The notes under the pieces are model-generated. The model was not told the DNA's origin. It ran no database searches and worked only from the letters and a program-made list of their open reading frames with translations. The translations under genes were made by a program, and so were the position numbers. A stretch of DNA of 64,000 bases from Malacoraja senta (lineage: Eukaryota): the NCBI GenBank assembly GCA_038087875.1, contig JAXLNO010006092.1, forward strand, positions 124,001-188,000. The letters run 5' to 3'. How positions within the stretch are numbered: position 1 is the stretch's first letter; the number at the start of each line of letters is the position of its first letter. Below, in pieces: positions 1-45,157 of the stretch.

Positions 1-110
1 AAAGGATTTCCCCCTTATCCTTAAGCTGTGACCCCTTGTCCTGGACTTCCCCAACATCGGGAACAATCTTCCTGCATCTAGCCTGTCCAACCCCATAAGA
101 ATCTTGTACA
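1..110 (-). mobile_element. CR1-like LINE 3' RT fragment (cut by window edge)
   Basis: Reverse complement matches the LDRLDAGRLFPMLGKSRTRGHSLRIRGKSF segment of the CR1 copies at 13262-14032 and 34555-36092. Confidence 0.85.
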
Positions 111-462
111 GGTTCCTGCACACCTTTGGAATGTGGAAGGAAACAAGAGCACCCGAAGAAAACCCATGCGATCAAAGTGAAAAGGAGCAAACTCCAAACA
201 GACAACACCCATATTCAGGATCAATTCCAGGTCTCTGGCACTTTTAGGCAGCAACCTTATGGCCAATGTACAGCCCCATTGTCTTGAACTTAATTAAAAC
301 GCCAAGTGTAGCATTTCCTGCAGTTGCAATGGAAAGTGCCAGGAGAGGGGGTGGTTTGGGTGGGAAGGGACGAATTGACCAGGGAGTTATGGAGGGAGCG
401 GTCTCTATGGAAAGCCAACAGGGGAGGAGATGGGAAGATGTGGCCAGTTGTGGGATCCCATT

Positions 463-921
463 GGTAGACAAAAAAGCTGTAGAAAATCAGCGGGTGAGGC
501 AGCACCTGTGGAGCGAAGGAATAGACGATGTTTCGGGTCGAGACCCTTCTTCAGATTGATGTCGGGGGGGGGGGGGGGGAATGACATGAAAAATAAAGGA
601 AGAGACGGAGACAGTAGGCTGTGGGAGAGCTGGGAATGGGAGGGGAAGGAGGGAGAAAGCAAGGACTACCTGAAATTAGAGAAGCCTATGTGCATAGCGC
701 TGGGGTGTAAACTACCCAAGCAAATATGAGGTGCTGCCCCTCCAATATGCGGTGGGCCTCACTCTGGCCATGGAGGAGGCCCAGGACAGAAAGGTCAGAT
801 TCGGAATGGGAGGGGGAGTTGAAGTGCTGAGCCACCGGGAGATCAGGTTGGTTATTGCGAACTGAGTGGAGGTGTTGTGCGAAGCAATCGCCAAGCCTGC
901 ACTTGGTCTCACCGAGGTTGA
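463..921 (-). mobile_element. Penelope-like element 3' fragment (GIY-YIG endonuclease end plus terminal repeat)
   Basis: ORF 686-985 contains GETKCRLGDCFAQHL..HFNSPSH..LILEGQHLI-like GIY-YIG motifs typical of Penelope-like elements. It is followed by the CTGAAGAAGGGTCTCGACCCGAAAC terminal repeat at about 527-554. Confidence 0.8.
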
Positions 922-1619
922 TCATATGCTGAATAATCCAACCACATTTTTTTTTGGAAGTGGAAAGAAATAATAGAAATTGCATTCATTGCAACGTGTA
1001 AAAAGAGTTAAGATACAGTATTATAATTGTGCTGCATGTCATTGTGGTATATATCATGTCCTGATTGGTGAATATGTTTAGTTTGTGGCTTTATTTGAAG
1101 CAGAAATAATATGTGAATGCTTCATTGAGCATAATTCTGACTGGTCGTCCGAGCACATTATCGCACGTGTCATGCAAGCCATCTTAAATAACCACCTAAA
1201 CTGTCATTTGGCAACTTAAAAAGCTACCAAGGTTGCCCGGCTGACAACAGAGAAAAGAAATTAAGTGAGAGCCCTGCAAGGTGTATAATATTTTTGACAC
1301 TGTCATAGGCCTTTCTTACATATGCTGTCACAACGCACTGTAGTCTCTAAACAACACTTCAGTAATTTTCCTTGCCCTCCATTTCAGAATAATAGTGTTT
1401 TAAGCCAATAACTCGACACTAGCAGTGGCAATAAATAAATAAATAAAGCCCAGCTTTCCAGCCCCTTATCTCATTGGCCACGCTCGGCTGCAAATCGGTG
1501 TCAATCTGGTGGACCATCTTCCTCTGGTCGTGGGGGTGGGGGATTGGGGGGGGGCCTCACAAGTGGAACAGCTTAGGGCCTCTCTTCATCTAAATCCGGC
1601 ACTGCTGGTAGGTTTCAAT

Positions 1620-2050
1620 GAGATTCCCACCTCATCCTTCTAAATCCCATGAGCACAGGCACAGAGACTTCAAACACTCCTCATACGTTAAATCAATCAT
1701 CCCCAGGACATACATCCTCTCGACCCTCTCCAAAGCCAGCACATCCTTTCTAATATGGAGCCCAAAACTGCTCACAATATTCCAAATGTGTCTTCACCAG
1801 TGCCCGATAAATCCTCAGCATTATATCATTGTTTTTATATTCTACGCCCCCCGAAATGAATGCTGGCATTGCATTTGCCTTACTTACCACTGACTCAATC
1901 TGCAAATGAACTATTTGGGAATCCTGCACTAGTACTCCCACTTTGTAGCTCAGGTTTCTCAATTCTCTCCCCATTTAGAAAATAGTCTATGTCTTTATTC
2001 CGACTGCCAAAATGTAAAACCAGACACTTGCTACACTGTATTCCATTTGG
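1620..2050 (-). mobile_element. Degenerate CR1-like RT fragment
   Basis: ORFs 1750-1974 and 1895-2107 give YRALVKTHLEYCEQFWAPY and KCLVLHFGSRNK, broken by stops and frameshifts. Confidence 0.75.
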
Positions 2051-2059
2051 CTCTGCTTT

Positions 2060-2705
2060 GCCCACTCGGTGGAACTGCTGCCTTACAGCGCCAGAGACCC
2101 GGTTCAATTCTGACTACGGGTCCCGTCTGTACAGAGTTTTGTACCTTCTCCCCGGGACTTGCGTGGGTTTTGCCTGGATCTCCGGTTTCCTCACTCAGTC
2201 CAAAGACATACAGGTTTGTAGGTTAATTGGCTTGGTATAATTGTAAATTGTCCCCTAATAAGTAAGATAATGTAAGTGTGCAGGGATCGCTGGTTGACGC
2301 AGACTCGGTGGGCTGAAGGGCCGGTTTCTGCGCTGTATCTCTTAAACTAAAACCACATTCCATTGACTATCAATAATTATGAGCAATTAGATAACCACAA
2401 ATTAATAATGGGTGGCACAGTGGCGTAGCGGTAGAGCTGCTGCCTTACTGCACCAGAGACCTGGGTTTGATCCTGACTACAGGTGCTGTCTGCAAGGACA
2501 TTGTATGTTCTCCCTGTGACTGCGTGGGTTTCCTCCCACACTACAAAGACATACAGGTTTGTAGGTTACTTGGCTTAGGTAAAATTGTAAATTGTCCGTA
2601 CTGTGTAGGTTAGTGTAAATGTATGGGTTGATCACTATTCAGCGAGGACTCAGTGAGCTGAGGGGCCTGTATCTGCAGCATATCTCTAAAGCCTAAAGCC
2701 TAAAT
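2060..2705 (+). mobile_element. Two adjacent tRNA-derived V-SINE (HE1-like) copies, about 2060-2352 and 2410-2705
   Basis: tRNA-like head (GGCACAGTGGCGTAGCGGTAG ... GGTTTGATCC), V-domain-like core GTTTGTATGTTCTCCCTGTGACTGCGTGGG, CR1-like tail GGGCTGAAGGGCC..TTTC and (CTAAA)n end. Confidence 0.8.
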
Positions 2706-2798
2706 CCACAGCTTAGTTAAGAGTGTGAGTTGAGACTGTTATCTCAGTCCAGGAGGTTTATGGTCTCAAGTGATCAGCCTCATTGACTTGCCACTTAC

Positions 2799-3071
2799 CC
2801 TGTGGAACATTGACTCCCTGCAGCAGAGTTGCATGTTCGATGTAACAGGAGAATTTTGCCACATCTTCTCTATTCAGTTGAATTGTATTCTTCAGCTGGT
2901 AAGTCCCATCCCAATTGGGCAACAGATCACTGGATTCAGACTCATGGACCCCCTCACCATCTCTCAGCCACGTTACATCAATGGCCCGTGGCTAGAAGCC
3001 TGTGACAAGGCAGGAGAGTCTCAGTGATTGCGACCCATCACGTTTAATCCCAATAAACACCTCAGGGGTTT
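2799..3071 (-). pseudogene. MHC class I-like alpha3 (C1-set Ig) exon with premature TAG at 2992-2994
   Basis: Manual translation: ETPEVFIGIKRDGSQSLRLSCLVTGF*PRAIDVTWLRDGEGVHESESSDLLPNWDGTYQLKNTIQLNREDVAKFSCYIEHATLLQGVNVPQ. Acceptor CTTACACTTGCAG, donor G|GTAAGT. The C..GF(Y)P..W..LPNxDGTYQ..CxxxH pattern is canonical. Confidence 0.92.
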
Positions 3072-3884
3072 CTGCAAGTGTAAGAAGAGTCAGAATCAGT
3101 GAAGACATGAACAAAAGCCTTCAATTGTAAGATCACTGCAACTCACCACTTTCCCAATCAGAGTTTTTTCTCTGGCTGAACTAAGTTTTCAGCCTAGACC
3201 CAAAATGCTGGAATAACTCAGCAGGTCAGGCAGCATTCTGGAGAGAAGGAATGCCCAGAGATGCTATCTGACCCACTGAGTTACACCAACATCTTCTATC
3301 TTCAGTGTAAACCATCATCTGCAGTTCTATCTTGCACAAAGTTTACAGCCTTTTCTCTTTTCATTTTGCATTTCTGGCAAAACAACAAAACATTTAGCTT
3401 TAATATCACTGACATGCTCCTTATCTTAGCTCCAGACTTTAACTGACAGCACAGATGAAAGGGGAATGCAGGCCCAATGGAGGAGTATAACTCACCATTG
3501 GGATTGATACTGTAGACATGATTGCTTCTACCTGTTCATGAATCTCTGCTGAATAATAACACTAAATATTCCAAGAGGGAATGGGAGGAAGAAGTTCTTC
3601 AAATAGAGAACTGTTGGAAATTGAATGTCACCATCCCAAGGAGTAATAGAGGCAAATAGAGAATCTGATTGAGTTTCTGATCAGTTCAGCAACAGACCCT
3701 TCAGGCCACAAGGTCGGTGCTAAACATAAGACCAAGATACATATTCCTCCATTTCCTGAATATCTATATGACTGTGGATAAAGGACACTGGTACAATATT
3801 TATCTTTCACTTGCACTTCCTACCCACTGGTTCCATCTAAGAGGCACGTTGCCAGACAATTTACTGATACCCACGTTGTAGAAC

Positions 3885-4180
3885 AGGGTGGCGAAGCGAT
3901 CGAGCTACTGCCTTACAGCGCCAGAGACCTGGGTTTGTTACTAACTACGGGTGCTTGTCTTTACACAGTTTGTACGTTCTCCCTGTGACCTGCGTGGGTT
4001 TTATCCGAGATCTTCGGTTTCCCCTCACACTCGAAAGACGTACAAATTTGTAGGTTAATTGAATTGGTATAAATGCAAATTGTCCCTAGTGTGTGTAGGA
4101 TAGTGTTAGTGTGCGGGCATGGCTGCTCGGTGCGGTGTCGGTGGGTTTCCGCGCTGTATCACTAAACTAAACTAAATAAT
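3885..4180 (+). mobile_element. V-SINE (HE1-like) in the alpha2-alpha3 intron
   Basis: Same head, core and (CTAAA)n tail as the copies at 2060-2705. Confidence 0.8.
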
Positions 4181-4275
4181 TACTCAAGTGACAGCCTGAC
4201 GTGCATGATATTTCCCACCTGATCTATCCAGAGGATATCCTCTGGCCCATCAGTCAGAGTGCCTACGTCGTGTAC

Positions 4276-4551
4276 CTCTCCTCTGTAGTGCTTCTTGTCC
4301 ACACTCCAGATATATCCGCAGCCACTTCACACAGTCCTTCTCCAGGAGATCTTTGAAATACTTGTTCATGAAGGTGTTGACATTCCACCGATCTGCTAGC
4401 ATCTGGAAATCTGGACGTAGTGCAATCCAGAACATTCTGTCCTTGTCAAAAGCACAGGCATCCTCCCCATCATAACCCAGTCTGACAAACCCATCAGTGG
4501 AATTGTCACTGTCCACTTCACAGCCGCAGAAACCCTGCACAAAGCAAACAG
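4276..4551 (-). CDS. MHC class I-like alpha2 exon (276 nt)
   Basis: TVCFVQGFCGCEVDSDNSTDGFVRLGYDGEDACAFDKDRMFWIALRPDFQMLADRWNVNTFMNKYFKDLLEKDCVKWLRIYLECGQEALQRR. It has QxxxGC, YDGED, W133, W147 and CxxWLxxYLExG motifs; acceptor CCCCAG, donor G|GTACAC. Confidence 0.93.
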
Positions 4552-5379
4552 CTGGGGCTGAGGTAGGGGTGGAGGATTTGGGTTGGGGTGAGTGGATGGA
4601 AGGGAGAGGCAATTTACAAATCAGTTCTCAGCATGGTACAAACAGGCATAACAGAACACAACATAGAGCTGTACAGCACAGGAGCAGGTTTAGCTCAGAG
4701 ATACAGCGCGGAAACAGGCCCTTCGGCCCACCGAGTCCGCACTGACCAGTGGTCCCCGCATATTAACACTATCCTACACAGACTACTTTTCTTTCCAGCT
4801 TTCTCCACCCTACTCCATCACTCTAAATGGTCCTGGTCTCATATGTTTTCTGTCCATTTGTCCACAGCATGCTGCCTGACTCGTTGAGTTCCTCCTGTTT
4901 GTTTTAAATTCAGATTGGCAGCATCTGCAGTTTGCTGTGACTCCATCTTAGCACAATGGATGATCAATGTGGATTCAGTGAGCAGAAGGGCCGGTTTCCA
5001 TGATGTGTGACTCAATGACCCATGGTCTATATACTGAGGGCATGGACTAACCTCAAGTGTTGAGGGGGGAAGCTTTACTGTTGCGGATGTAACACTAAAG
5101 GAGTTTTGCTGTGTCAGAAGGGTAGAACTCAGATTCTGCACTTTCGTACATAAAGAACAGAGGAAGGAGTGCATTGTCAGATGGGCAATGTTATACAGTG
5201 AACAGGTCAGTCTCAAGGTTAAGGCAATGCAGATGGGTAGTACATCAAGGCTGTTGCACTGTGTGGGATTGCTACACTCTCTGTGGATTGTTGCCAGTAT
5301 TGAGGGAATGCTGGATTAACAGAATATTATTGTTGAGGGAATACATCATAGTCACCATCAACCAGCTTAATCAAGGTCC

Positions 5380-6240
5380 CATCTCTAGGTGATCAGGCTA
5401 TAAATAAACTATGGTTTCTCCCTCATTCTAGCCCAATAAAACAGATGATCCAATCCATCCACTTTTTACTGGTGTTAAATATCAAATGCTTAACCCATAA
5501 AGAGACTATCACCAGCCAACTGTTATCAATGGGTGTTCAGCAGTTAGGACACATTAAATATAGACGATGGGCCGTGTCTCTATCAAAATGTGATGGAGTA
5601 AATGTCTGAAACAGCATCAATGGTGCTGAAGTGAAAAAGGTTGAGAGTTTCTGGTTCCCCTACTGCCTCAGGAGACTAAGGAAATGCGGCATCTCCAATG
5701 ACTCTTACAAACTTCTACAAATGTGCCATAGAAAGCACACTGACAGGTTGCATCACAACTTAGTTTGGAAAGAGTTCTGCCCAATACCGCTGGAAATTGC
5801 AGAGAGGTGGAGATGTAGCACAGTCGATCACACAAACATGATTCCCCACCAGTGAATCCATCTATATTTCAACTGGTTCAGGAAAGCAGACAACATAATC
5901 AAAGATTCATCCCGCTCTGGTCATTCCTTCTTCTTCCTGCAGAAGGTACGTAAGCATTAAAGCGTGCACCACCAGACTCAGTAACTGTTTCCTCCCCTAT
6001 GTTGTCTGGTTTATGAACAGTCCTCCCTTATGCTAGGGTTCACCTCAACCCCATTGTAGACACTGGACTTTGTCTCTGGCACTGGTGCCTTACAATGCTG
6101 AGAACTACATTCTGCACTCTTTGCTCTTCCTATTGTACGAGTTTGGTTTGATTGTATTTATGAATAGTTTTCTTTGATGTGATTGACTAACATGCAAAAA
6201 AAGTGTATCAGAGAATCATGTGACAGCAACAAAACTAAAA
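5380..6240 (+). mobile_element. Degenerate Rex1/Babar-like LINE 3' fragment
   Basis: Broken frames give VKKVESF..YCLRRLRKCGIS..NFYKCAIESTLTGCI-like peptides resembling the clearer Rex1-like copies at 41815-42910 and 51655-52775. Confidence 0.6.
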
Positions 6241-6297
6241 CAAAATCCATCTGTGTCATCACTGAGTGTCTACCCCAGGTCCGGTCACGACACTTAC

Positions 6298-6558
6298 TCG
6301 AGATACCATGTTGCTGTTGGTAGACTATCTCAGCATTTCCTCTGACAATCCCATGAAAACCTGCAACTGTGATGGCCATTGAATCCCATTGATCCTGCGG
6401 GAAAGACTGGGCCATCCATCGCTGTCTGGGAATAGCCAGCTCTAGTGTGCTTTCAAAATATGCTATCTGGAGGTCATCCAGCCTTGCTACCATACTGTAC
6501 TCAGGCAGCTCACTCAATCCATGGTTCAACAGGTAGTAAGATGCAAGATGGTGTAAAT
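6298..6558 (-). CDS. MHC class I-like alpha1 exon (261 nt)
   Basis: DLHHLASYYLLNHGLSELPEYSMVARLDDLQIAYFESTLELAIPRQRWMAQSFPQDQWDSMAITVAGFHGIVRGNAEIVYQQQHGIS. It has GLxxLPEY, LDDxQIxYF, PRQxWM and xWD motifs; acceptor TTTATGCATTGCAG, donor A|GTAAGT. Confidence 0.9.
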
Positions 6559-6744
6559 CTGCAATGCATAAACAATAATAAATGATTGTATCATTCACTG
6601 AAAATAACTAAGAGTTATTAAACTGATAACAATACAAGAACTTTGAATAAGGGAGTCACAAGGACCTGCAGATGCAAGTGCTGGAGGAACTCAGTGGGGC
6701 AGGCAGCATCAATGATCAGGTGACAATTTGTGTCAGAAGCCTTT

Positions 6745-7055
6745 AGTTTACTTTTTAGCTTAGAGATACAGCATGGAAACAGGCCCTTCGGGCCACTGAG
6801 TCCACACTGACCAGCAACCCCCACACTCTAACACTATCCTACACACACAAGGGCAATTTACATTCTACGCCAAGCCAATTAAACTACAAACCTGTACGTC
6901 TTTGGAATGTGGGAAGAATCTGAAGATCTCAGGAAAAACCCACACGGTCAGGTGGAGAATGTACAAACTCCATACAGACAGGACCCGTAGTCAGGATCCA
7001 ACCTGGGCATTGGTGCTGTAAGGGCGATAAGGCAGCATCTCTAATGCTGCACCAC
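6745..7055 (-). mobile_element. V-SINE (HE1-like)
   Basis: Reverse complement of the family seen at 2410-2705 and 3885-4180. Confidence 0.75.
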
Positions 7056-7650
7056 TGAGCCTTCTTCAAGTGTTGGCTAGATGGGCTCTGATACCTATTC
7101 CACCAATTGTGGTCGAGGTATTGAATGATCCTATTGGATTGCTTCCCATCTTCAAAGATCTATTATTATCTATCATGTCGATATAGTCTACTAGTTACAA
7201 GATTCCAAAATTCAAAGAATATTTTATTATATTAAGAAAATGGACAACGTCAAGGAGATTTTATAAAATCATAGAGAGGTAAAGTCAAAGAGTCATACAG
7301 CAGGGAATCAGGGCCTACGGCTGCATGGCCTAATTCAATCATGGCTGCTCTATCTCGCCCTCTCAACCACATTCCCTGCTTTCGCCCCATAACCCTTGAC
7401 ACCCATACTGATCAAGAATCTGTCAATATCCACCTGAGAAATATCCATTGACGTGGGCTCCACGGCTGTCTGAGGAGGCCCATATCCTTCTAAACCTATC
7501 TATCCATGTACCAGATTAAATGTTTCTTAAATGTTGCGATAGTACCTGCCTGAACTCCCTTCTCCGGCAGTTCATTCAGTACTCCCACCACAGCTATGCC
7601 TCTATTAAATCTTTCCCCCCTCATTTTAAACTTATGTATTCATTTTTTGC

Positions 7651-9171
7651 CCATTTTGGTTTCACCATGTAGAAATTACACCTGTGTTTATACATAGTCC
7701 CCCCATTTCAGGGCACCATAATGTTTGGGACATGGCTTCGCAGATGTATGTAATTGCTCAGGGGTATTTAAATGCCTCCTTAATGCAGGTATAAGAGAAC
7801 TCAGCATCTAGTCTTTCCTCCAGTCTTTCCATCACCTTTGGAAACGTTTATTGCTGTTCATCAACAGGAGGACCAGAGTTGTGCCAATGAAAGTAAAAGA
7901 GACCATTATGAGACTGAGAAACAAGAATAAAACTGTTCGAGACATCAGCCAAACCTTAGGCTTACCAAAATCAAACTGTTTGGAACATCATTAAGAAGAA
8001 AGAGAGCACTGTGAGCTTACTAATCGCAAAGGGACTGGCTGGCCAAGGAACACCTCCACAGCTGATGACAGAAGACTTCTCTCTATAATAAAGACAAAAC
8101 CCCAATCCTTTACTAATCGCAAAGGGACTGACAGGTCAGAAACACTCATCAGGAGTCAGGTGTGGATTTGCCAATGACCACTGTCCGCAGAAGACTTCAT
8201 GAACAGAAATACAGAGACTGCACTGCAAGATGCAAACCACTGTTTAGCCGCAAAAACAGGATGGCCGGGTTACAGTTTGCCAAGAAGTACTTAAAAGAGC
8301 AACCACAGTTCTGGAAAAAGGTCTTCTGGACAGATGATACAAAGATTAACTTATATCGGAGTGATGCCAAGAGCAAAGTATGGAGGAGAGAAGGAACTGC
8401 CCTAGATCCAAAGCATACCACCTCATCTGTGAAACACGGTGGTGGGGGTGTTGTGGGCTGGGCATGTATGGCTGCTGAAGGTACTGGCTAACTTAGCTTT
8501 GTTGACCATTCAGCTACTGATGGTAGTAGCATAATGAATTCTGAAGTGTATAGACACATCCTATATGTTCAAGTTCAAACACATTCGCCTCAAAACACAT
8601 TACCCAGCGGTTCATACTACAGCAAGTCAATGATCCCTAAAGCAACAAAGGAGTTTTTCAAAGCTAAAAAATTGTTAATTCTTGAGTGGCCAATTCAATC
8701 ACCCGATCTGAACGCAACTGAGCATGCCTTTGATATGCCAAAGAGAAAACTGAATGGGGACTAGCCCCCAAAACAAGCACAGGCTGCAATACAGGCCTGG
8801 CAGAGCATCGCCAGAGAAGTCACCCAGCAACTGGCGATATCCATGAATCACAGACTTCAAGCAGTCATTGCATGCATAGGATATGCAACAAAATACTAAA
8901 CATGGCTACTTTCATTTACATGACATTGCTGTGTCCCAAACATTATGGTGCCCTAAAATGGGGCAGACTATGTATTTTGTGACTATGTAAATTGACTGCT
9001 GTAATTTCTACATGGTGAAACAAAAATGTTTAAAAAATTGCCTTTTTTAAAATCTGACAATGTGCACTTTAACCACATGTGATTTTTTTCTATTACAAAT
9101 CTCAAATTATGGAGTACAGAGGCAAATAAATATATGATGGGTCTTTGTCCGAAACATTATGGAGGTCACAG
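7651..9171 (+). mobile_element. Defective Tc1-like DNA transposon with long inverted repeats (left TIR truncated)
   Basis: Transposase fragments contain KVFWTDDTKINL, SSVKHGGGGVVGWACMAA and SPDLNATEH. The inner TIR at 7651-7730 (CATTTTGGTTTCACCATGTAGAAATTAC..GGGCACCATAATGTTTGGG) is inverted at about 8935-9030. The right end is followed by TA. Confidence 0.88.
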
Positions 9172-9544
9172 TATGTACGATCAATTCACACTGGCCAATT
9201 TACCTCTCAGCCTCTCATCTTTGGAATATTGGGAGAAACTGGAATAACCAGAGGAAGCACACATGCTTTCAGGGAAAGAATAAAAGTGCCACACAGGTTG
9301 TAGTAGAGATCGGGATTGAGTCCAGGGCCTCATAGGCACCATCTCTATGAGCTGCAACCCTGAAATGCCCATCTGGTGGGAAATCTCTGCATGGAATGGG
9401 GCACTTCTGACTTATGAGGACATTGGGATTCTGTAACAGTAAGTGTAAAGAAGACCTTACTGATGAGTCCCGACTATCAAGGCTTGGGTGGGGTGGGGGG
9501 TGGGGGTGGGGTCGGAGCAGACTATAATAAACAGGGTCTAAACT

Positions 9545-10090
9545 GAAACTCGACACATACTGGAGTAACTTAGTGGGTCAGGCAGCATCTCCGGAGAAAA
9601 GGAAAAGGTGACGTTTCGGGTCGAGACCCTTCTTCAGACTGAGAATCAGGAGACAGGGAACCAAGCGATATGAAAAGGTACATAGAACAAATTAATAAAA
9701 GATATACCCCCGACTCTGTCTGAAGAAGTGCCTTGACCTGAAACGCCATCTATTCCTTTTCTCCAGCGATGCTGCCTGACTTCCTGATTTACTCCAGCTT
9801 TTTGTGTCTATCTTCGGTGTACACCAGCATCTGCATCACCAGTCTGAAGAAGGGTCTAGACGCGAAACATCACCCATTTCGTCTCTCCAGAGATGCTGCC
9901 TGTCCCGCTGAGTTACTCCAGCTTTTTGTGTCTATCTTCGGTTTAAATCAGCATCTGCAGTTCCTTCTTACACATCTAAACTGATGTCTAAACTGAAACA
10001 TCACCTATCCATGTTCTCCAGACATACTGCCTGACCTGCTGAATTACTCCAGCATTTTATGTGTATTAACCAGCATCTGCATTTTCTTGT
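9545..10090. repeat. Cluster of Penelope-type terminal repeats in both orientations
   Basis: Repeated CTGAAGAAGGGTCT.GAC.CGAAAC ... GATGCTGCCTG.C..GCTGAGTTACTCCAGC units: one on minus (about 9560-9660) and several on plus (about 9715-10085). Confidence 0.7.
9604..9645 (-). ncRNA. Minimal type-I hammerhead ribozyme-like motif
   Basis: Minus strand reads AGT-CUGAAGA-A-GGGU(CUCG)ACCC-GAAA-C-GUC-ACC: conserved core, 4-bp stem II, palindromic ACGU stem III and GUC cleavage triplet. Confidence 0.6.
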
Positions 10091-10754
10091 TTCTACATGA
10101 ATAAGCAGTATTTGTTCTGTGATAAAGTTTCCATGCAGCACACCAGACAGTGTCAAAGTTCAGTGTCAAAGTGAGGTGAGAAGGGGCCCCAAAGGGAGAG
10201 TTAGAAGTGTCTGTTTCAGTGTTACCAGGAGAAACATAAGAAGGCTAGTGGAATACAGTAATGATAAAATCCACGTGACTTCCCAAAACAATCCACAGCC
10301 AAGGATTTTTGTTTTATATGTTATTATTTCAACAGGGGAATCACCATTTTATATTTACTTTCATCTGATAACAATGGGATTAAACTTTCAGGATGAGTAG
10401 GTTTGTAATCTCCAAGCCTTCACGATTGTCAGAATAGTTAGAAAGGAAGCATTGTGTGGGAAGAAATTGCTCATCAGATTCCCATTAAATCTCCCCCCCC
10501 TCAATTTAAACCTATTTCTTCTGGTTCTCGATTCTGTAATCTGTTGAATATGTTGCCCACTTGAAAATTTCCAGATTTAGATTGATATATTTTTGTTCAT
10601 TAAGGGTGTAATGGGTTAGAGCTCAGCCACAATGTCTGTGCCGAACATGATGTCAAGTTAAACTAAACTGCTTGTAGATGATTCATATCCCTCAAGTCCC
10701 TACATATCCACGTGCCTATCCTCAAGCTTCTTAAATCTCATTATCGTCTTCTGG

Positions 10755-12527
10755 GGAAGTCGTGGATAGAGCCTGGATTGACACCTGGAAGTATGTTGTT
10801 GTGGCGATCAGTGACACATGGTTGCAGGAGGGCTGTGATTGGAAACTAAATATTCCAGGATTTCGTTGCTTCTGGTGTGATAGAATTGGAGGGTCAAGAG
10901 GTGGGGGTGTTGCATTGCTTGTCAAGGAAGATATTACAGCAGTGCTTTGGCAGGATAGAGTAGAGGGCTCGTCTAGGGAGGCTATTTGGGTGGAACTGAG
11001 AAATGGGAAAAGTGTAGCAACACATATAGGGGTGTATTATAGACTGCCTAATGGGGAGCGAGAATTGGAAGAGCAAATATGTAAGGAGATAGCAGATATT
11101 AGTAGTAAGCACAAGGTAGTGATTGTGGGAGATTTCAATTTTCCACACTTAGACTGGGAAACACTTACTGTAAAAGGGCTGGTTGGTTTGGAATTTGTAA
11201 AATGTGTGCAGGATAGTTTTTTGCAGCAATACATAGAGGTACCTACTAAAGAAGGGGCAGTGCTGGACCTCCTGTTAGGAAATGAGACAGGGCAGGTGGC
11301 GGAGGTGGGCGTTGGGGAGCACTTCGGGTCCAGTGATCACAATACCATTAGTTTCAATATAATTATGGAGAGGATCAGAACTGGACCTAGGGTTAAAATT
11401 TTTGATTGGAGAAAGTCTAACTTTGAGGAGATGCGAAAGGATTTAAAAGGAGTGAATTGGGACATGTTGTTTTATGGGAAGGATGTAGTAGAGAAATGGA
11501 GGACATTTAAAGGTGACATTTTAAGAGTACAGAATCTTTATGTCCCTGTTCGGTTGAAAGGAAATAGTAAAAATTGGAAAGAGCCATGGTTTTCAAGGGA
11601 AATTGGACACTTGGTTCGGAAAAAGAGAGAGATCTACAATAATTATTGCCAGCATGGAGTAAATGAGGTGCTTGAGGAGTATAAAGAATGTAAAAAGAAT
11701 ATTAAGAAATAAATTAGAAAAGCTAAAAGAAGATATGAGGTTGCTTTTGCAAGTAAGGTGAAAGTAAATCCAAAGGGTTTCTACAGCTATATTAATAGAA
11801 AAAGGATAATAAGGAATAAAATTGGTCCATTAGAGAGTCAGAGTGGACAGCTATCTGCAGAGGCAAAAGAGATGGGGGAGATATTGAACAATTTTTTTTC
11901 TTCGGTATTCACCAAGGAGAAGGATATGGAATTCTGTGAGTTAAGGGAAACAAGCAGAGTAGCAATGGAAACTATGAGATTCAAATAAGAGGAGGTGCGG
12001 ACAGTTTTGAAAAATATGAAAATGGATAAGCCTCCAGGTCCTGACAGGATATTTTCTAGGGCAGTGAGGGAAGTTAGTGTAGAAATAGCAGGGGCTATGA
12101 CAAAAATATTTCAAATGTCATTAGAAACGGGAATAGTGCCGGAGGATTGGCGTACAGCGCATGTTGTTCCGTTGTTTAAAAAGGGTTGTGAGAGTAAACC
12201 AAGCAATTATAGACCTGTTAGTTTGACGTCAGTGGTGGGCAAATTAATGGAAATGATACTTAGAGATAATATATATAAGCATCTGGATAAGCAGGGTCTG
12301 ATTAGGAACAGTCAACATGGATTTGTGCCTGGAAGGTCATGTTTGACTAATCTTCTTGAATTTTTCGAAGAGGTTACTAGCGAAATTGATGAGGGTAAAG
12401 CAGTGGATGTTGTCTATATGGACTTCAGTAAGGCCTTTGACAAGGTTCCTCATGGAAGGTTGGTTAAGAAGATTCAATTGTTCGGTATTAATGGTGGAGT
12501 AGCAAGATGGATTCAACAGTGGCTGAA
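10755..12527 (+). mobile_element. CR1-like LINE (subfamily 'C') ORF2 fragment: APE endonuclease to RT N-half, 3'-truncated
   Basis: ORFs 10762-11712 (VGDFNFP, LDLLLGN, SDHN) and 11995-12576 ([31 protein letters not shown]). The element ends abruptly at GGCTGAATG. Confidence 0.92.
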
Positions 12528-17404: not shown

Positions 17405-20400
17405 TTAAGGATCAGATAGGCGATTCTGTGGACGCAGTCAGGAGACCCAGATGGTAGTTTGCCTCACTGGTGCCAGGGTCTGGGATGTGTCTGAACGTGT
17501 CCAAGATATCCTGAAATGGGAGGGAGAGGAGCCTGAGGTCATGGTACATATAGGTACCAATGACATAGGTAGAAAAAGAGAAGAGGTCCTGAAAGGAGAA
17601 TCTAGGGAGTTAGGAAGAGAGTTAAGGAGAAGGACCGCAAAAGTAACAATCTCAGGATTACTGCCTGTGCCACGTGACAGTGAGAGTAGGAATCGACTGA
17701 GGTGGAGGATAAATTTGGGGCTGAGGGACTGGTGCAGAGGGCAGGGATTCAAGTTTCTGGATCATTGGGGCCACTTTTGGGGAAGGTGTGACCTGTACAA
17801 AAAGGATGGGTTGCACTTGAACCTGAGGGGAATCAATATCCTGGTGGCAAGATTTGCAAACGCTACTGGGGGGACTTTAAACTAGAACGGTTGGGGGGAG
17901 GGACTCAAATAGAGAAAGCTAGTAGACGGTGTGTGAGGCAGGAGGCAGAGAAGGGAAGCACTCAGACCCAACATGTAGGGAAGAAAGAAGAAAAAGATAA
18001 TAAACAGAGAATAAGAGGTGGTGGGTTTCTTAAATGTGTATATTTTAATGCTAGGAGCATTGTAAGAAAGGTGGATGAGCTTAGAGCCTGGTTTGACACC
18101 TGGAAGTATGATGTTGCGGCGATTAGTCAAATCAAATCAAATCAACCTTTATTGTCATCTTGCAAGCAACAGTTGTACAGTGCAAAATGAAAAGACGTTT
18201 CCCAGGGAATACCGGAGCATCGCACATGAAATTTAAAACATTTCACACATAATAACACTTAAAAACTATCCAGTCCCTGATGGAACAGTATAAATAGTTT
18301 AAAAAGTAGGTAAAAACAACGTTAAAATACAGTAAACCAATCATAAACATGTCCGGGGTGGCTGATTTGAGTGGCCAGTGCCAGCTATTGAAGTGGCCAG
18401 TGTCAGTTATTAAAGTGTCCGTGCCAAGCCGCAGAATCAGGTGACTGTGAGTACAGAGTGGCTGTTTATCAGCCTCGCAGCATATGGCAGGAAGCTGTTT
18501 AGCATTCTTGTAGTCCGGGCTTTGATGCTGCGATATCTCTTGCCTGATGGCAGGAGATCCAGGTGTATGTGGAGGGGGTGCAGTTTGTCCTTAGCAATTC
18601 TCTGAGCTTTTTTCCGACAGCGGCTCTGGAACAGTTCTTGTACCGAGGGTAGGGAGACGCCAATGATCTTCTCTGCTCCCCTCATTACCCTCTGCAGAGC
18701 CTTCCTGTTCGAGCAGTTGCAGGTGGAGTACCACATATTTATGCAGTACGTGAGTACAGACTCCACCGTACCCCTGTAGAAAGTCCTGAGGATGTTGGTG
18801 GGGATTGAGGCCTGTTTTAGTTTCCTCAGGAAGTGCAGTCGCTGATGGGCCCGTTTGACGGTCCCAGTGGTGTTCCTGGACCAGGTGAGGCTGTCTGTAA
18901 TTTGCACCCCGAGGAACTAGTGAAACATGGTTGCAGGATGGCTGTGATTGGAAACTAAATATTCCAGAGATAAGAGGTGGAGGTGTTGCATTGCTTGTCA
19001 AGGAAGATATTACAGCAGTGCTTTGGCAGGATAGATTAGAGGGCTCGTCTAGGGAGGCTATTTGGGTGGAACTGAGAAATGGGAAAGGTGTAGCAACACT
19101 TATAGGGGTGTATTATAGACCGCCTAATGGGGAGCGAGAATTGGAAGAGCAAATATGTAAGGAGATAGCAGATATTAGTAGTAAGCACAAGGTAGTGATT
19201 GTGGGAGATTTCAATTTTCCACACATAGACTGGGAAACACATTCTGTAAAAGGACTGGATGGTTTGGAGTTTGTAAAATGTGTGCAGGATAGTTTTTTGC
19301 AGCAATACATAGAGGTACCTACTAGAGAAGGGGCAGTGCTGGATCTCCTGTTAGGAAATGAGACAAGTCAGTTGACAGAAGTATGTGTTGGGGAGCACTT
19401 CGAGTCCCGTGATCACAATGCCATTAGTTTCAATATAATTATGGAGAAGGTCAGAACTGGACCAAGGGTTGAGATTTTTGATTGGAGAAAGGCTAACTTT
19501 GAGGAGATGCGAAAGGGTTTAAAAGGAGTGAATTGGGACATTTTGTTTTATGGGAAGGATGTAGAAGAGAAATGGAGGACATTTAAAGGTGAAATTTGAA
19601 GAGTACAGAATCTTTATGACCCGGTTCAGTTGAAAGCAAAGAGTAATAATTGGAAAGAGCCATGGTTTTCAAGGGAAATTGGACATGGTTCGGAAAAAGA
19701 GAGAGATCTACAATATTTATAGGCAGCATGGAGTAAATGAGTTGCTTGAAGAGTATAAAGAATGTAAAAAGAATCTTAAGAGAGAAATTAGAAAAGCTGA
19801 AAGAAGATATTGAGGTTGCTTTGTGAAAGTAAATCCAAAGGGTTTCTACAGCTATATTAATAGCAAAAGTATAACGAGGGATAAAATTGGTCCATTAGAG
19901 TGTCACAGTGGACAGCTATGTGCAGAGCCAAAAGAGATGGGGGAGATATTGAACAATTTCTTTTCTTCGGTATTCACCAAGCAGAAGGATATTGAATTAT
20001 GTGAGGTAAGGGAAACAAGTAGAGTAGCTATGGAAACTATGAGATTCAAAGAAGAGGAAGTGCGGACACTTTTGAAAAATATAAAAATGGATAAGTATCC
20101 AGGTCCGGACAGGATATTCCCTAGGACATTGAGGGAAGTTAGTGTAGAAATAGCAGGGGCTATGACAGAAATATTTCAAATGTCATTAGAAACGGGAATG
20201 GTGCCGGAGGATTGGCGTACTGCGCATGTTGCTCCATTGTTTAAGAAGGGTTCTAAGAGTAAACCTAGCAATTATAGACCTGTTAGTTTGACGTCAGTGG
20301 TGGGCAAATTAATGGAAAGGATACTTAGAGATAATATATATAATCATCTGGATAAACAGGGTCTGATTAGGAACAGCCCGCATGGATTTGTGCCTGGAAG

Positions 20401-21654
20401 GTCATGTTTGACTAATCTTCTTGAATTTTTTGAAGAGGTTACTAGGGAAATTGATGAGGGTAAAGCGGTGGATGTTGTCTATATGGACTTCAGTAAGGCC
20501 TTTGACAAGGTTCTACATGGAAGGTTGGTTAAGAATTGTTGGGTATTAATAGTGGAGTAGCAAGATGGATTCAACAGTGGCTGAATGGGAGATACCAGAG
20601 AGTAATGGTGGATAACTGTTTGTCAGGTTGGAGGCCGGTGACTAGTGGGGTGCCTCAGGGATCTGTGTTTTGGTTCCACTGTTGTTTGTCGTATACATCA
20701 ATGATCTGGATGATGGTGTGGTAAATTGGATTAGTAAGTATGCAGATGATACTAAGATAGGTGGTGTTGTGGATAATGAAGTAGATTTTCAAAGTCTACA
20801 GAGAGATTTAGGCCATTTGGAAGAGTGGGCTGAAAGATGGCAGATGGAGTTTAATGCAGATAAGTGTGAGGTGCTACATCTTGGTAGGACAAATCAAAAT
20901 AGGACGTACATGGTAAATGGTAGCGAATTGAGGAATGCAGTAGAACAGAGGGATCTAGGAATAACTGTGCATAGTTCCCTGAAGTTGGAATCTCATGTAG
21001 ATACGGTGGTAAAGAAAGCTTTTGGTCTGCTGGCTTTTATAAATCAGAGCATTGAGTATAGAAGTTGGGATGTAATGTTAAAATTGTACAAAGCATTGGT
21101 GAGGCCAATTCTGGAATATGGTGTACAATTTTGGTCGCCAAATTATAGGAAAGATGTCAACAAAATAGAGAGAGTACAGAGGAGATTTACTAGAATGTTG
21201 CCTGGGTTTCAGCACCTAAGTTACAGAGAAAGGTTGAACAAGATAGGTCTTTATTCTTTGGAGCGCAGAAGGTTAAGGGGGGACTTGATAGAGGTCTTTA
21301 AAATGATGAGAGGGATAGACAGAGTTGACGTGGATAAGCTTTTTCCATTGGTAGTAGGGAAGATTCAAACAAGAGGACATGATTTGAGAATTAAGGGACA
21401 AAAGTTAAGGGGAAACATGAGGGGGAACCTCTTTACTCAGAGAGTGGTAGCTGTGTGGAATGAGCTTCCAGTGGAAGTGATGGAGGCAGGTTCGATTTTA
21501 TCATTTAAAAATAAATTGGATAGGTATATGGACGGGAAAGGAATGGAGGGTTATGGTCTGAGTACAGGTAGATGGGACTAGGTGAGAGTAAGTTTTCGGC
21601 ACGGACTAGAAGGGCCGAGATGGCCTGTTTCCATGCTGTAATTGTTATATTATA
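17405..21654 (+). mobile_element. Near-full-length CR1 (subfamily 'C'): ORF1 SGNH-esterase C-half plus disrupted ORF2 (APE-RT), flanked by TACCCA direct repeat
   Basis: ORF 17451-17885 has GAR..VHIGTNDIG..DGLHLN (CR1 ORF1 esterase). APE and RT ORFs at 18931-21581. TACCCA at 17399-17404 and 21655-21660. Confidence 0.9.
18128..18917 (-). mobile_element. Rex1/Babar-like LINE 3' fragment nested in CR1, TAGT target-site duplication
   Basis: ORF 18437-18907 (KRAHQRLHFLRKLK..FYRGTVESVLTYCI) with a (TTTGA)n tail. TAGT at 18124-18127 and 18918-18921. Absent from copy 2 (GATTAGTGAAAC intact near 45060). Confidence 0.9.
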
Positions 21655-22157: not shown

Positions 22158-23160
22158 TAAGTAAGTAAGTTTATTGGCCAAGTATTCACATACAAGGATT
22201 TTACCTTGGTGCTCCGCCCACAAGTAACAACATGACATACAGTGACAGTTACGAACGACTCAGAAAACACTAAACATTAATGATAATAAAACATTAATGA
22301 TAAAACACCATTGACCAAGCATGTGAACCAACAAAATACCAGATCAAAGGGAGGCTACAGATTTTTGGCTGTTGAGTAGAGCAACTACTCGTGGATAAAA
22401 ATTGTTTTTATGTCTGGTTGTGGCAGCTTTGACAGCCCGGAGTCGCCTTCCAGAGGGAAGTGATTCAAAGAGTTTGTGGCCAGGATGAGAGGGGTCAGAG
22501 ATGATCTTGCCCGCTCGCTTCCTGGCCCTTGCAGTGTACAGTTCATCAATGGAGGGAAGGTTGCAGCCAATAACCTTCTCTGTTGATCGGACGATTCGCT
22601 GCAGCCTCCAGGTGTCGTGCTTGGTGACTGAGCCAAACCAGACCATGATGGGGATGGTGAGGACAGACTCTACGATGGCCGTGTAGAATTGGACCATCAT
22701 TGCCTGTGGCAGATTGTGCTTCCTCAGCTGCCATAGGAAGTCCATCCTCTGTTGTGCCTTTTTGACTGTGGAGTCGATGGTAGCCCCCCACTTAGGGTCC
22801 TTGGAGATGATGGTTCCCAGGAACTTAAAAGACTCCACAGATGTGACTGTGGTGTTGTTGATGGTGAGTGGGGTGAGGGGAGGGGGAGCTCTCCTAAAGT
22901 CTACAATAAATTCCACTGTCTTAAGAGCATTGAGCTCCAGGTTGTTGCGATGGCACCAGGATGCCAGCTGCATCACTTCCTGTCTGTAGGCAGATTCTTC
23001 CCCATCCTGAATCAGTCCAATCAGGGTTGTGTCGTCCGCAAACTTGAGAAGCTTGACAGAGGTGTCAGTGGAGGTGCAGTCATTGGTGTAGAGAGAGTAG
23101 AGGAGAGGAGAGAGTACACAGCCTTGCGGTGCTCCTATGCTGAGCGTTTGCGGGTCCGAG
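22158..23160 (-). mobile_element. Rex1/Babar-like LINE RT/3' fragment
   Basis: [33 protein letters not shown] motifs; (TTAC)n tail at about 22158-22172. Confidence 0.9.
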
Positions 23161-23890
23161 ATGTGCCCCATTATTACCTCTTTAATAATTGACTCCAGCA
23201 CCTTTCCCACCAATGAAGTCAGGCTAACTGGTCTGTAATTCCCCACTTACTCTCTCGCTCCTTTCTTGAAAAGTGGGATGAAATTAGCTATCCTCCAATC
23301 CACAGGAACTGATCCTGAATCAATTGAACATTGGAAAATGATCACCAATGCATCCACTATTTCTAGAGCCACCTCCCTGAGGATCCTGGGATGCAGACCA
23401 TCAGGCCCAGGGGATTTATCATCCTTCAGTCCCATAAGCCTACCCAATACTATTTCTCGCCTAATGAAAATGTCTTTCAGTTCCTCTACCCCCTTAGATC
23501 CTCTGTCCTCCAATACTCCTGGGAGATTGTTTGTGTCTTCCTTAATGAAGACAGATCCGAAGTACCTATTCAACTCTTCTGCCATTTCCTTGTTACCCAT
23601 AATAATTTCACCCGTGTCTGCCTTCAAGGGACCCACATTTGTCTTTGCTATTCTTTTTCCCTTAACATATCTAAAGAAGCTTTTACTGTCCTTCTTTATA
23701 TTCCTGGCCAGCTTCCCTTCGTACTTCATCTTTTCAGCCCGTATTGCCCGTTTTGTTTCCTTCTGTTGTCCTATGAAAGTTTCCCAATCCTCTGTCTTCC
23801 GGCTACTCTTTGCTGTGTTATACATCTTTTCTTTTAGTTTTATTCTATCCCTAACTTCACTTGTCAGCCACGGTTGCCTCCCACTCCCCT
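23161..23890 (-). mobile_element. CR1 (subfamily 'B') ORF2 internal fragment
   Basis: KSPGPDGLHPRIL, VDWRIAN and NYRPVSLTS motifs; nearly the same as 58320-58990. Confidence 0.9.
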
Positions 23891-37582: not shown

Positions 37583-40500
37583 ATAACCATATAACCATAT
37601 AACCATTACAGCACGGAAACAGGCCATCTCGGCCCTTCAAGTCCGTGCCGGATTTAAAATAAATAAATAAATACTTCCCCCCTAGTCCCATCTACCTGCA
37701 CTCAGACCATAACCCTCCATTCCTTTCCTGTCCATATACCCATCCAATCTATTTTTAAAGTATAAAATCGAACCAGCCTCCACCACTTCCACTGGAAGCT
37801 CATTCCACACAGCTACCACTCTCTGAGTAAAGATGTTCCCCCTAATGTTACCCCTAAACTTCTGTCCCTTAATTCTCGTCATGTCCCCTTGTTTGAATCT
37901 TCCCTACTCTCAATGGAAATAGCTTATCCACGTCAACTCTGTCTATCCCGCTCATAATTTTAAAGACCTCTATTAAGTCCCCTCTTAACCTTCTGCGCTC
38001 CAAAGAATAAAGACCTAACTTGTTCAACCTTTCTCTGTAACTTAGTTGCTGAAACCCAGGCAACATTCTAGTAAACCTCCTCTGTACTCTCTCTATTTTG
38101 TTGACATCATTCCTGTAATTAGGCGACCAAAATTGTACTCCATACTCCAGAATTGGCCTCACCAATGCCTTGTACAATTTTAACATTACATCCCAACTTC
38201 TATATTCAATGCTCTGATTTATAAAGGCCAACACACCAAAAGCTTTCTTTACCACCCTATCTACATGAGATTCCGCCTTCAGGGATCTATGCACAGTTAT
38301 TCCTAGATCCCTCTGTTCAACTGCATTCCTCAATTCTCTACCATTTACCATGTACGTCCTATTTTGATTTGTCCGGCCGAGATGTTGTACCTCACATTTA
38401 TCAGCATTAAACTCCATCTGCCATCTTTCAGCCCACTCTTCCAAATGGCCTAAATCTCTCTGTAGACTTTGAAAATCTACTTCATTATCCACAACACCAC
38501 CTATCTTAGTATCATCTGCATACTTACTAATCCAATTTACCACACCATCATCAAGATCATTGATGCATATGACAAACAACAGTGGACCCAACACAGATCC
38601 CTGAGGCACCCCACTAGTCACCGGCCTCCAACCTGACAAACAGCCATCCACCATTACTCTCTGGCATCTCCCATTCAGCCACTGTTGAATCCTTCTTGCT
38701 ACTCCACCATTAATACCCAACAATTGAATCTTCTTAACCAACCTTCCATGAGGAACCTTGTCAAAGGCCTTACTGAAGTCCATATAGACAACATCCACTG
38801 CTTTACCCTCATCAATTTCCCGAGTAACCTCTTCAAAAAATTCAAGAAGTTTAGTCAAACATGACCTTCCAGGCACAAATCCATGTTGACTGTTCCTAAT
38901 CAGACCATGTTTATCCAGATGCTTATATATATTATCTCTAAGTATCCTTTCCATTAATTTGCCCACCACTGACGTCAAACTAACAGGTCTATAATTGCTA
39001 GGTTTACTCTTAGAACCCTTTTTAAACAATGGAACAACATGCACAGTACGCCAATCCTCCGGCACTATTGCCGTTTCTAATGACATTTGAAATATTTCTG
39101 TCATAGCCCCTGCTATTTCTACACTAACTTCCCTCAATGTCCAAGGGAATATCCTGTCAGGACCTGGAGACTTATCCATTTTTATATTTTTCAAAAGTGT
39201 CAGTACTTCCTCTTCTTTGAATCTCATAGTTTCCATAGCTACTCGGCGCTGTCGTACAGCAGCGGCTCGCCTGCAGTCCGTCTGATTTTACTTTTGTTGT
39301 TGTTTTCTTTTGTCCTGTTTCAGTTAAATTTTAGTTTATTGGGTTGTGTATGTGTGGGGTGGGGGGTGGGGGGGGTGAAACATGACTTTTGTCTCTTCCT
39401 TCGGGGGAATGCGACTTTTTCTTGTCGTGTCCCCTTTCTCTGCCTCCGTCTGCGCTGAGGCCAAAATGGCGGAGCTGCCGGCCTCCAACTCCAACTGCGA
39501 GCTGCCGGCCTCCAACTCCAACTGCGAGCGACCGACCGACCTCGAGGCTCCGGAGGCAGAGCCAGGACTTACCAGCGCGGGGGAGGGGGAGAGGGGGAAT
39601 GAGGGGGGGAGAGAGGGGGAGAGAGATAGGGGGAGAGAGGGGGTGAGAAAGGGGTGAGAGAGGGAGGGGAGAGAGAGAGGGGGAGATAGGTCAGCCATGG
39701 TTGCAAGGCGGAGTGGACTCGGTAAGTTGGCGATATGCAGAGTACTGCCCTGCTGACTACAAATTCAGAAAGGTCCAATGCAGACAATGCCAAGTGTGGG
39801 CTAGCAGAAGTGAAATGGGCCGAAGGGCCTTTTCCGGACGCTCCAGGCTCCCCGCATCCACCCCGTTGTCCCGCAAGGTCGGTTTGGTGACTTTTGGGGG
39901 AGTTTTTGGGGCAAATGGTTTTGAAATGAGACAGAACCCGGCCTGCAAGGGCCACATTAAGTGTGGATTTAGTGTGAGTTATAACGTGTGGGGGAACCGC
40001 CTGCCAGCACCTGTGCATTCTGCCCCTGCTGCATTAAAGGGAATGCATGCATCACTGGCTGCATTGCTGCCTCCCCCGCTGCATGGTAGCGCTTTTATCT
40101 TTACCTGCTCTTCACAGCTGCATTCCCGAGGCGATTCCGGCGGGAGGGGGGACGCTTTAGGGCGGCGCACCGACGCTGGCAAAGCGGGACGGCGGGTCTC
40201 AGGCGTCCGGGTGGAGGGCGAAATGCCGAATGTTGGTTCTGGGTTGTTTTCGTTTTTGTTTTTTTTGGTGCATTGAGGATGGGAAGGAGAGGAAAAAGGA
40301 GTGTGAGAGAAAGTTGTGAGAAAGTTTTGAGGGAAGAGAGGGAAGGGAAGGGAGAGAGGGAGGGAATGAGTGAGAGAAAGTTTGAGAAAGTTATGAGAAA
40401 GTTTTGAAAACCTTTGAGAAACTTGAAAATGTNNNNNNNNNNNNNNNNNNNNNNNNNNNNNNNNNNNNNNNNNNNNNNNNNNNNNNNNNNNNNNNNNNNN

Positions 40501-43912: not shown

Positions 43913-45157
43913 CTACTCTACTTGTTTCCGTTACCTCACATAATTCAATATCCTTCTCCTTGGTGAATACCGAAGAAAATCAATTGTTCAATATCTCCCC
44001 CATCTCTTTTGGCTCTGCAGATAGCTGTCCACTCTGACTCTCTAATGGACCAATGTTATCCCTCGTTATCCTTTTGCTATTAATATGGCTGTAGAAACCC
44101 TTTGGATTTACTTTCACCTTACTTGCCAAAGCAACCTCATATCTTCTTTTAGCTTTTCTAATTTCTCTCTTAAGATTATTTTTACATTCTTTATACTCTT
44201 CAAGCACCTCATTTACTCCATGCTGCCCATAATTATTGTAGATCTCTCTCTTTTTCCGAACCGTGTCCAATTTCCCTTGAAAACCATGGCTCTTTCCAAT
44301 TACTACTCTTTCCTTTCAACCGAACAGGGACATAAAGATTCTGTACTCTTAAAATGTTATCTTTAAATGTCCTCCATTTCTCTATTACATCCTTCCCATA
44401 AAACAAAATGTCCCAATTCACTCCTTTTAAATCCTTTCGCATCTCCTCAAAGTTAGCCTTTCTCCAATCAAAAATCTCAACCCTTGGTCCAGTTCTGACC
44501 TTCTCCATAATTATATTGAAACTAATGGCATTATGATCACTGGATCCAAAGTGCTCTCCAACACATACTTCTGTCAACTGACCTGTCTCATTTCCTAACA
44601 GGAGGTCCAGCACTGCCCCTTCTCTAGTAGATACCTCTATGTATTGCTGCAAAAAACTATCCTGCACACATTTTACAAACTCCAAACCATCCAGCCCTTT
44701 TACAGAATGTGTTTCCCAGTCTATTTGTGGAAAATTGAAATCTCCCACAATCACTACCTTGTCCTTACTACTAATATCTGCTATCTCCTTACATATTTGC
44801 TCTTCTAATTCTCGCTCCCCATTAGGCGGTCTATAATACACCCCTATAAGTGTTGCTACACCTTTCCCATTTCTTTGTTCCACCCAAATAGCCTCCGTAG
44901 ACGAGCCCTCTAATCTATCCTGCCAAAGCACTGCTGTAATATCTTCCCTGACAAGCAATGCAACACCTCCACGTCTTGCCCCTCCAATTCTGTCACACCT
45001 GAAGCAATGAAATCCTGGAATATTTAGTTTCCAATCACAGCCATCCTGCAACCAAGTTTCACTAATCGCCACAACATTATACTTCCAGGTGTCAATCCAG
45101 GCTCTAAGCTCATCCACCTTTCTTACAATGCTCCTAGCATTAAAATAGACACATTTA

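Follow-up and report, generated by a model that had tools for sequence, protein, structure and literature searches.

A 64,000-nucleotide stretch of the Malacoraja senta genome (GenBank contig JAXLNO010006092.1, positions 124,001 to 188,000; hereafter the window) carries part of a class I-like gene of the major histocompatibility complex (MHC), whose alpha1, alpha2 and alpha3 exons lie on the minus strand between positions 2799 and 6558 (Table 1). These limits, proposed by an earlier sequence-only reading of the window, are the exact outer ends of alpha3 and alpha1, and no further class I exons were found anywhere in the 64 kb. All three exons are bounded by canonical AG acceptors and GT donors and are in phase 1, with the frame-keeping alpha2 acceptor being the upstream CCCCAG, which restores the frame with alpha1, and not the nearer GTGCAG, which does not. 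Pfam profiles detected MHC_I in alpha2 (E 4e-16) and C1-set in alpha3 (E 7e-9), and the order of MHC_I alpha1/alpha2 followed by a C1-set immunoglobulin (Ig) domain, each in its own phase-1 exon, places the gene in the MHC class I superfamily. Among structures of the Protein Data Bank (PDB), the top match of alpha1 was 9ch4, titled as shark nonclassical MHC class I, UGA (E 4.5e-21, 78 bits), with 43 bits for 8gm8, titled likewise for UFA; 9ch4 was also the top match of alpha3 (E 7e-15), whereas alpha2 scored highest against MR1 (E 2e-17, 66 bits, vs E 9e-14 and 55 bits for 9ch4). The alpha2 donor AGGAGAG/GTACACG (the slash marks the splice junction) is kept in skate, sawfish and the window. 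Despite this conserved canonical donor, the NCBI model P0001 of Leucoraja erinacea extends its alpha2 exon by 12 residues (GTRPRHSDWWNG, L001:12983-13021), which is probably a model artefact.

A search of the alpha1 exon against 1.8 billion representative proteins returned P0001 at 90% identity, with the next match at about 42%. When P0001 was used as the query, named matches at 54-72% identity were found in 12 shark and ray species (Leucoraja, Pristis, Mobula, Hypanus, Pristiophorus, Heptranchias, Scyliorhinus, Stegostoma, Hemiscyllium, Mustelus, Cetorhinus, and Chiloscyllium), after which identity dropped to 33-36%. There was one match per species, plus second partial models in L. erinacea (P0068) and Pristiophorus (P0067), and the lineage is single- or low-copy in sharks and rays. 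A maximum-likelihood tree of 58 ectodomain rows grouped the window sequence with P0001 (support 100/100) inside a batoid clade (100/96), and with P0001 and P0055-P0065 as a whole at 100/100; this lineage of 12 rows branches according to the split between rays and sharks. Its sister (93/85) is a 16-row clade of 9ch4 relatives (UGA; 100/100), and both clades contain sharks and rays, whereas the UFA relatives P0017 and P0035 were placed elsewhere. Since the two clades are separately supported, sharks and rays occur in each, and both genes are found in the same species, the split between UGA and its sister predates the divergence of sharks and rays. P0001 and the sawfish (Pristis pectinata) orthologue P0055 served as stand-ins for the window protein in whole-chain searches and folding. 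The AlphaFold model of P0055 (predicted local distance difference test score, pLDDT, 91.7) fitted 9ch4 best (template-modelling scores 0.91/0.93, 38% identity), followed by MR1, chicken BF2, and shark UAA. The lineage is marked by the motifs FFVQGxCGCE (CFVQG in place of FFVQG in the window copy), DNSTDGF, and FMNKYFKxLLEKDCVKW. The lineage is thus the sister of UGA and is not UGA, UFA, MR1, CD1, or classical UAA. An identity with UGA was rejected because the window sequence belongs to the separate clade and because both genes occur in Pristis, Leucoraja, Mobula, and several sharks, and an identity with UFA because the sequence lies outside the clade of 8gm8 relatives and its alpha1 exon scores far better with 9ch4 than with 8gm8.

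The residues that hold peptide termini in classical class I molecules were compared by aligning the window gene with P0015, a classical-type teleost class I protein that has all of them. The substitutions listed by the sequence-only reading were all borne out (Y7 to S, Y59 to Q, R/Y84 to Q, Y/F123 to A, T143 to L, K146 to R, and Y159 to L), and the proper alignment did not bring the anchor residues back; W147 and Y171 are kept and the N86 sequon is lost, as that reading had said. With anchors Y7, Y59, Y/R84, T143, K146, and Y159 gone, the gene does not qualify as classical class I (UAA), and the description of a non-classical class I molecule without peptide-terminus anchors holds for the lineage. 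Not every change is shared, however, as S7 and Q59 are private to the window copy, all other lineage members with data having F7 and H59. The beta2-microglobulin (beta2m) contacts Q96, D119, G120, and D122 are retained within the motifs VQG and GYDGED. An extra cysteine at floor position 99 is invariant in the lineage and adjoins Cys101 of the alpha2 disulfide, and a sequon in the alpha2 loop is the lineage's counterpart to N86.

Across 43 groove-lining positions of class I molecules, the mean Kyte-Doolittle value of the lineage was 1.36, compared with 0.92 for UFA, 0.68 for UGA, and 0.13 for classical-type proteins; in the lineage, 76% of these positions are hydrophobic and 7% charged. Among 11 orthologues, 23 of the 43 groove positions are invariant, compared with 30% of the alpha3 positions, and the ratio of non-synonymous to synonymous substitution rates (dN/dS) of alpha2 between skate and sawfish is 0.10-0.12. 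According to a personal communication cited in a review (PMC12562908), the lipids bound by UFA and UGA resemble those of CD1d. A predicted groove that is more hydrophobic than those of UGA and UFA, and highly conserved, makes a lipid-like ligand plausible for the lineage, and the most likely function of its intact members is probably to hold a conserved lipid-like or hydrophobic ligand on a beta2m-associated transmembrane molecule and to offer it to T cells, in the manner reported for the neighbouring UGA. This ligand type is a prediction from sequence alone. The proposal of a beta2m binder with a non-peptide, possibly lipid, ligand is supported for the lineage by its beta2m motifs, its hydrophobic groove, and UGA as the nearest relative.

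UGA (9CH4) is the nearest relative of the lineage by tree, sequence score, and fold, and its genes are tandem neighbours of the lineage gene in the sawfish MHC. A transmembrane segment and a cytoplasmic tail are common to the two, and they share the groove residues G97, M152, Y155, F156, L159, L160, and D163, with Y171 present in nearly all. On the other hand, the two are only 38-42% identical, the lineage has F7, H59, C99, and W167 where UGA mostly has Y7, Y59, F99, and L167, the N86 sequon is replaced by NST in the alpha2 loop, and the groove is the more hydrophobic one. UFA (8GM8, CD1-like), which was mapped to the MHC class Ib cluster by Verissimo et al. 2023 (PMC10751288), also belongs to the non-classical class I molecules of sharks and rays and lacks peptide anchors, but its alpha2 is remodelled, and the model P0017 of the UFA lineage has a short hydrophobic tail at its end. 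A hydrophobic groove without peptide anchors is also found in CD1, although the sole CD1 relative retrieved was 27% identical and the groove of the lineage is built like those of ordinary class I and UGA, with the C101-C164 disulfide.

In skates, the window gene is 90% identical in amino acids and 95% in exon nucleotides to P0001 (89-90% in alpha1), and exons, introns, and flanks of the two loci are colinear at 85-93% identity with identical splice sites, the intron between alpha2 and alpha3 being about 4.8 kb longer at the L. erinacea locus (L001). A second L. erinacea copy, P0068 (L005, JAMYXN010000412.1:53058-77289), is truncated and has no alpha1 exon, and its NCBI model includes intron-derived sequence. 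Over 1.37 kb of shared intron and exon, the window and L001 are 93.2% identical, and each is 90.6% identical to the P0068 copy; the window gene may be an additional paralogue or else the P0001 orthologue of a related skate. For the intron stretch 5071-5370, one sequencing run (X1) gave two contig variants, one at depth 40 with 3 differences and one at depth 134 with 19 differences, and a second run (X2) gave only the divergent variant among the matches listed, as would be expected of a diverged allele or a collapsed paralogue.

Unlike P0001, which keeps the tyrosine of the alpha3 GFYP motif, a leader exon, and a transmembrane/cytoplasmic exon, the window copy has an in-frame TAG at that tyrosine. 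The codon is covered by contigs from two samples of the best-matching organism, X1 (2763-3143) and X2 (2945-3135), which differ from the window solely at position 2980 (A to G, synonymous); since both contigs carry the same TAG, the stop is not an assembly slip. At 2980 itself, contigs of four runs have G where the window has A (ATC vs ATT), and G is also the form found in sawfish and in the L. erinacea copy. The batoid leader exon encodes MLLFTLLNTY(G/C)VATVSS, followed by the donor G/GTAAGC (here the slash before GTAAGC marks the junction), and is conserved in L001 (100-150) and in the sawfish locus L002 (12581-12631), 9.9 kb and 5.4 kb 5' of alpha1, respectively. It had been missed by the NCBI models, P0001 being labelled partial and P0055 having a long implausible N-terminus from other upstream sequence. 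No match to this exon was found anywhere in the window, including the 57 kb upstream of alpha1, and a scan of the window for ATG plus a hydrophobic stretch and a phase-1 donor gave no credible leader candidate. Similarly, the transmembrane/cytoplasmic exon sits 2.66 kb after alpha3 in L001, and neither tblastn nor blastn with that exon found one in window 1-2798, where a search for hydrophobic stretches matched only a short interspersed nuclear element (SINE). Colinearity with the L. erinacea copy stops at 1605 on the 3' side and at 10765 on the 5' side, the latter against an endonuclease open reading frame (ORF) of a long interspersed nuclear element (LINE).

The substitution pattern of the window copy is also that of a gene under relaxed constraint. 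Its dN/dS is 0.74 against the L. erinacea copy (dS 0.06) and 0.24 against sawfish, and when changes were polarised with sawfish, 11 non-synonymous and 2 synonymous changes fell on the window branch, compared with 5 and 3 on that of L. erinacea. Residues invariant in the other orthologues are broken at five positions (F7S, D36E, V43I, H59Q, and the tyrosine changed to a stop), whereas P0001 departs from such residues at none. The window copy has no intact frame of leader, alpha1-3, and transmembrane/cytoplasmic segments. Because of the alpha3 stop, the lack of a leader within 57 kb, the lack of a transmembrane exon, and the relaxed constraint, the window copy cannot make a beta2m-binding surface molecule, and that part of the sequence-only reading does not stand for this gene. 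It is very likely a non-functional relic (pseudogene) of an old, MHC-linked, UGA-sister non-classical class I lineage. Of the gene, only the alpha1-alpha3 exons are left, with a nonsense codon in alpha3; the leader and transmembrane exons are missing from the window, the flanks have been replaced by retrotransposon sequence, and the coding sequence has drifted at positions unchanged in every other member.

Several observations weigh against a relic. The splice sites are all perfect and the frame is open but for one codon, which makes the inactivation a recent one; the stop might still be segregating as a null allele; and the missing exons may lie outside the window, as only 2.8 kb is seen downstream of alpha3 and transposable elements could have carried the leader beyond the 57 kb upstream. 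The counts of the branch test are small (13 vs 8 changes), and the finding of the alpha2 exon in no indexed RNA run is weak evidence, as few runs are indexed and contigs show presence rather than absence. The gene might then be functional: the stop would be a rare null allele or an error of assembly or sequencing, the missing exons would sit just beyond the window, and the intact L. erinacea relative demonstrates that skates can retain such a gene. This explanation is nevertheless very unlikely, given that the sequence over the stop is identical in contigs of two samples, that no leader is present in 57 kb where relatives have it at 5-10 kb, that on either side LINE sequence cuts off the homology to the relative, and that dN/dS is near neutral with otherwise invariant residues changed.

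Table 1. Features of the class I-like gene copy and its surroundings in the 64,000-nucleotide window
Feature	Position	Strand	Remarks
alpha1 exon	6558-6298	-	261 nt, phase 1, 87 residues
Ser at HLA position 7	6541-6539	-	TTT to TCT on the branch of the window copy; Phe in other members with data
Gln at HLA position 59	6391-6389	-	CAC to CAA on the branch of the window copy; His in 11/11 orthologues
Intron alpha1-alpha2	6297-4552	-	Colinear with L. erinacea locus L001, 89-92% identity
alpha2 exon	4551-4276	-	276 nt, phase 1
Extra Cys at HLA floor position 99 (CGC motif)	4528-4526	-	Invariant in the lineage; Phe in UGA, Tyr in classical-type
N-S-T sequon, alpha2 loop	4504-4496	-	Lineage's counterpart to N86; NTT in Mustelus
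Intron alpha2-alpha3	4275-3072	-	SINE at about 3880-4140
alpha3 (Ig C1-set) exon	3071-2799	-	273 nt, phase 1, stop inside
In-frame TAG at Tyr of alpha3 GFYP	2994-2992	-	TAC in the L. erinacea copy and sawfish
3' flank colinear with the L. erinacea copy	2798-1605	-	Homology stops at 1605
5' flank colinear with the L. erinacea copy	6559-10765	-	Homology stops at 10765 against LINE endonuclease ORF (10762-11712, +)
tRNA-like SINE copies flanking exons or inside introns	2410-2640, 3880-4140, 6740-7060
Reverse-transcriptase/endonuclease ORFs	10762-11712, 19823-21581, 22344-23246, 37869-39236, 44233-45117, 47000-48091, 62497-63858		LINE domains

Besides the gene, the window holds only LINE reverse-transcriptase and endonuclease ORFs and SINEs, and no MHC linkage is evident from the window itself. 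From 10762 to 64000 it is nested LINE debris with no other host gene evident, in which a 230-bp repeat is present in at least 8 copies. The enormous read depth at 2410-2640, 3880-4140, and 6740-7060 is due to the SINE copies at these positions. The sawfish orthologue P0055 is LOC127585976 (CM019888.1, 13,956,125-13,977,896) and is marked MHC-Ib, between B2M/BRD2 and COL11A2/RXRB, in the supplement of Verissimo et al. 2023 (PMC10751288), where genes are labelled MHC-Ib without lineage names; linkage between B2M/BRD2 and COL11A2/RXRB thus holds for this orthologue. The UGA-type sawfish genes P0148 (14.02 Mb) and P0151 (14.20 Mb) lie 42 kb and 220 kb beyond P0055, and all three loci are on the plus strand in the same supplement (PMC10751288). 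Neighbours of the UGA type on the same strand point to an old tandem duplication. The sawfish cluster contains 8 class I genes: three of the UGA type, the UGA-sister gene, and four others. The three UGA-type genes in sawfish are P0148, P0151, and P0152, with P0148 and P0151 in tandem beside the UGA-sister gene, and sharks mostly have one.

The sequence-only reading had left it open whether the lineage was known or undescribed. The lineage is annotated by NCBI under the name MR1-like, its sawfish member is marked MHC-Ib, and it is neither UFA nor UGA. No published name for it was found, and a literature search on 9CH4/8GM8, UFA/UGA, and shark CD1-like structures gave no primary paper. Taken at its label, the lineage would be the orthologue of MR1, which presents small metabolites via a Schiff base. 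The alpha2 exon does score highest against mammalian MR1 in the PDB, the length of the alpha2 helix is the same, the W143-C161 spacing is as in MR1, and Y152 and W164 are common to both. In a hand alignment to the MR1 sequence, however, Arg9 is replaced by Tyr and Arg94 by Gly, and the Schiff-base Lys43 is replaced by Ala (A, T, I, or C across the lineage), which removes both the Schiff-base lysine and the Arg9/Arg94 cradle of the ligand; alpha1 and alpha3 are closest to UGA, as is the whole model. In addition, the UGA-lineage protein P0002 also matches MR1 second best, which means that the likeness to MR1 is shared and general. There is no evidence of orthology, which is extremely unlikely, and the name MR1-like reflects general alpha2 similarity only.

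A more serious alternative, to which somewhat less than an even chance is given, is that the lineage is one of the published elasmobranch class Ib lineages (UDA, or UCA) and that nothing in it is new. The single-copy UDA was placed in the B2M-COL11A2 class Ib cluster (PMC10751288), the home of the sawfish orthologue, which the same study marked MHC-Ib (Verissimo et al. 2023, PMC10751288), and these authors would hardly have missed a conserved gene that all annotated elasmobranch genomes contain. However, no named GenBank entry was among the relatives retrieved, and the four other class I genes of the sawfish cluster could cover UDA, UFA, and the multicopy UEA; by this counting argument only, the sawfish gene count leaves room for the lineage as an addition to the published ones. 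Some of the published lineages have also been described as shared with holocephalans, whereas no chimaera orthologue was found among the retrieved relatives; the Callorhinchus MR1-like proteins were rejected as candidates, as they form a separate species-specific family. Somewhat less than an even chance is also given to the reading that the lineage is a further, unnamed, single- or low-copy antigen-presenting class I lineage, which was tandem-duplicated with UGA before the shark-ray split and whose skate copies have been duplicated and are being lost. If so, a groove more hydrophobic and better conserved than in UGA or UFA, together with the invariant Cys99, would imply a distinct, conserved hydrophobic ligand. 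The window locus itself is very likely an unremarkable pseudogene from a UGA-sister class Ib lineage that is annotated but may lack a name.

On its own, the locus is of little importance, being another dead class I gene in a transposon-rich region. The lineage, on the other hand, bears on the open question of how early the presentation of lipid-type or small ligands by class I molecules arose, in that UGA has a conserved sister and MHC neighbour, about as old as the split between sharks and rays, with a groove that is more hydrophobic still and hardly changes. Skates have duplicated the gene (Leucoraja erinacea has at least two copies, to which the window copy is added), and copies are decaying, which is relevant before probes, tetramers, or expression studies are designed.

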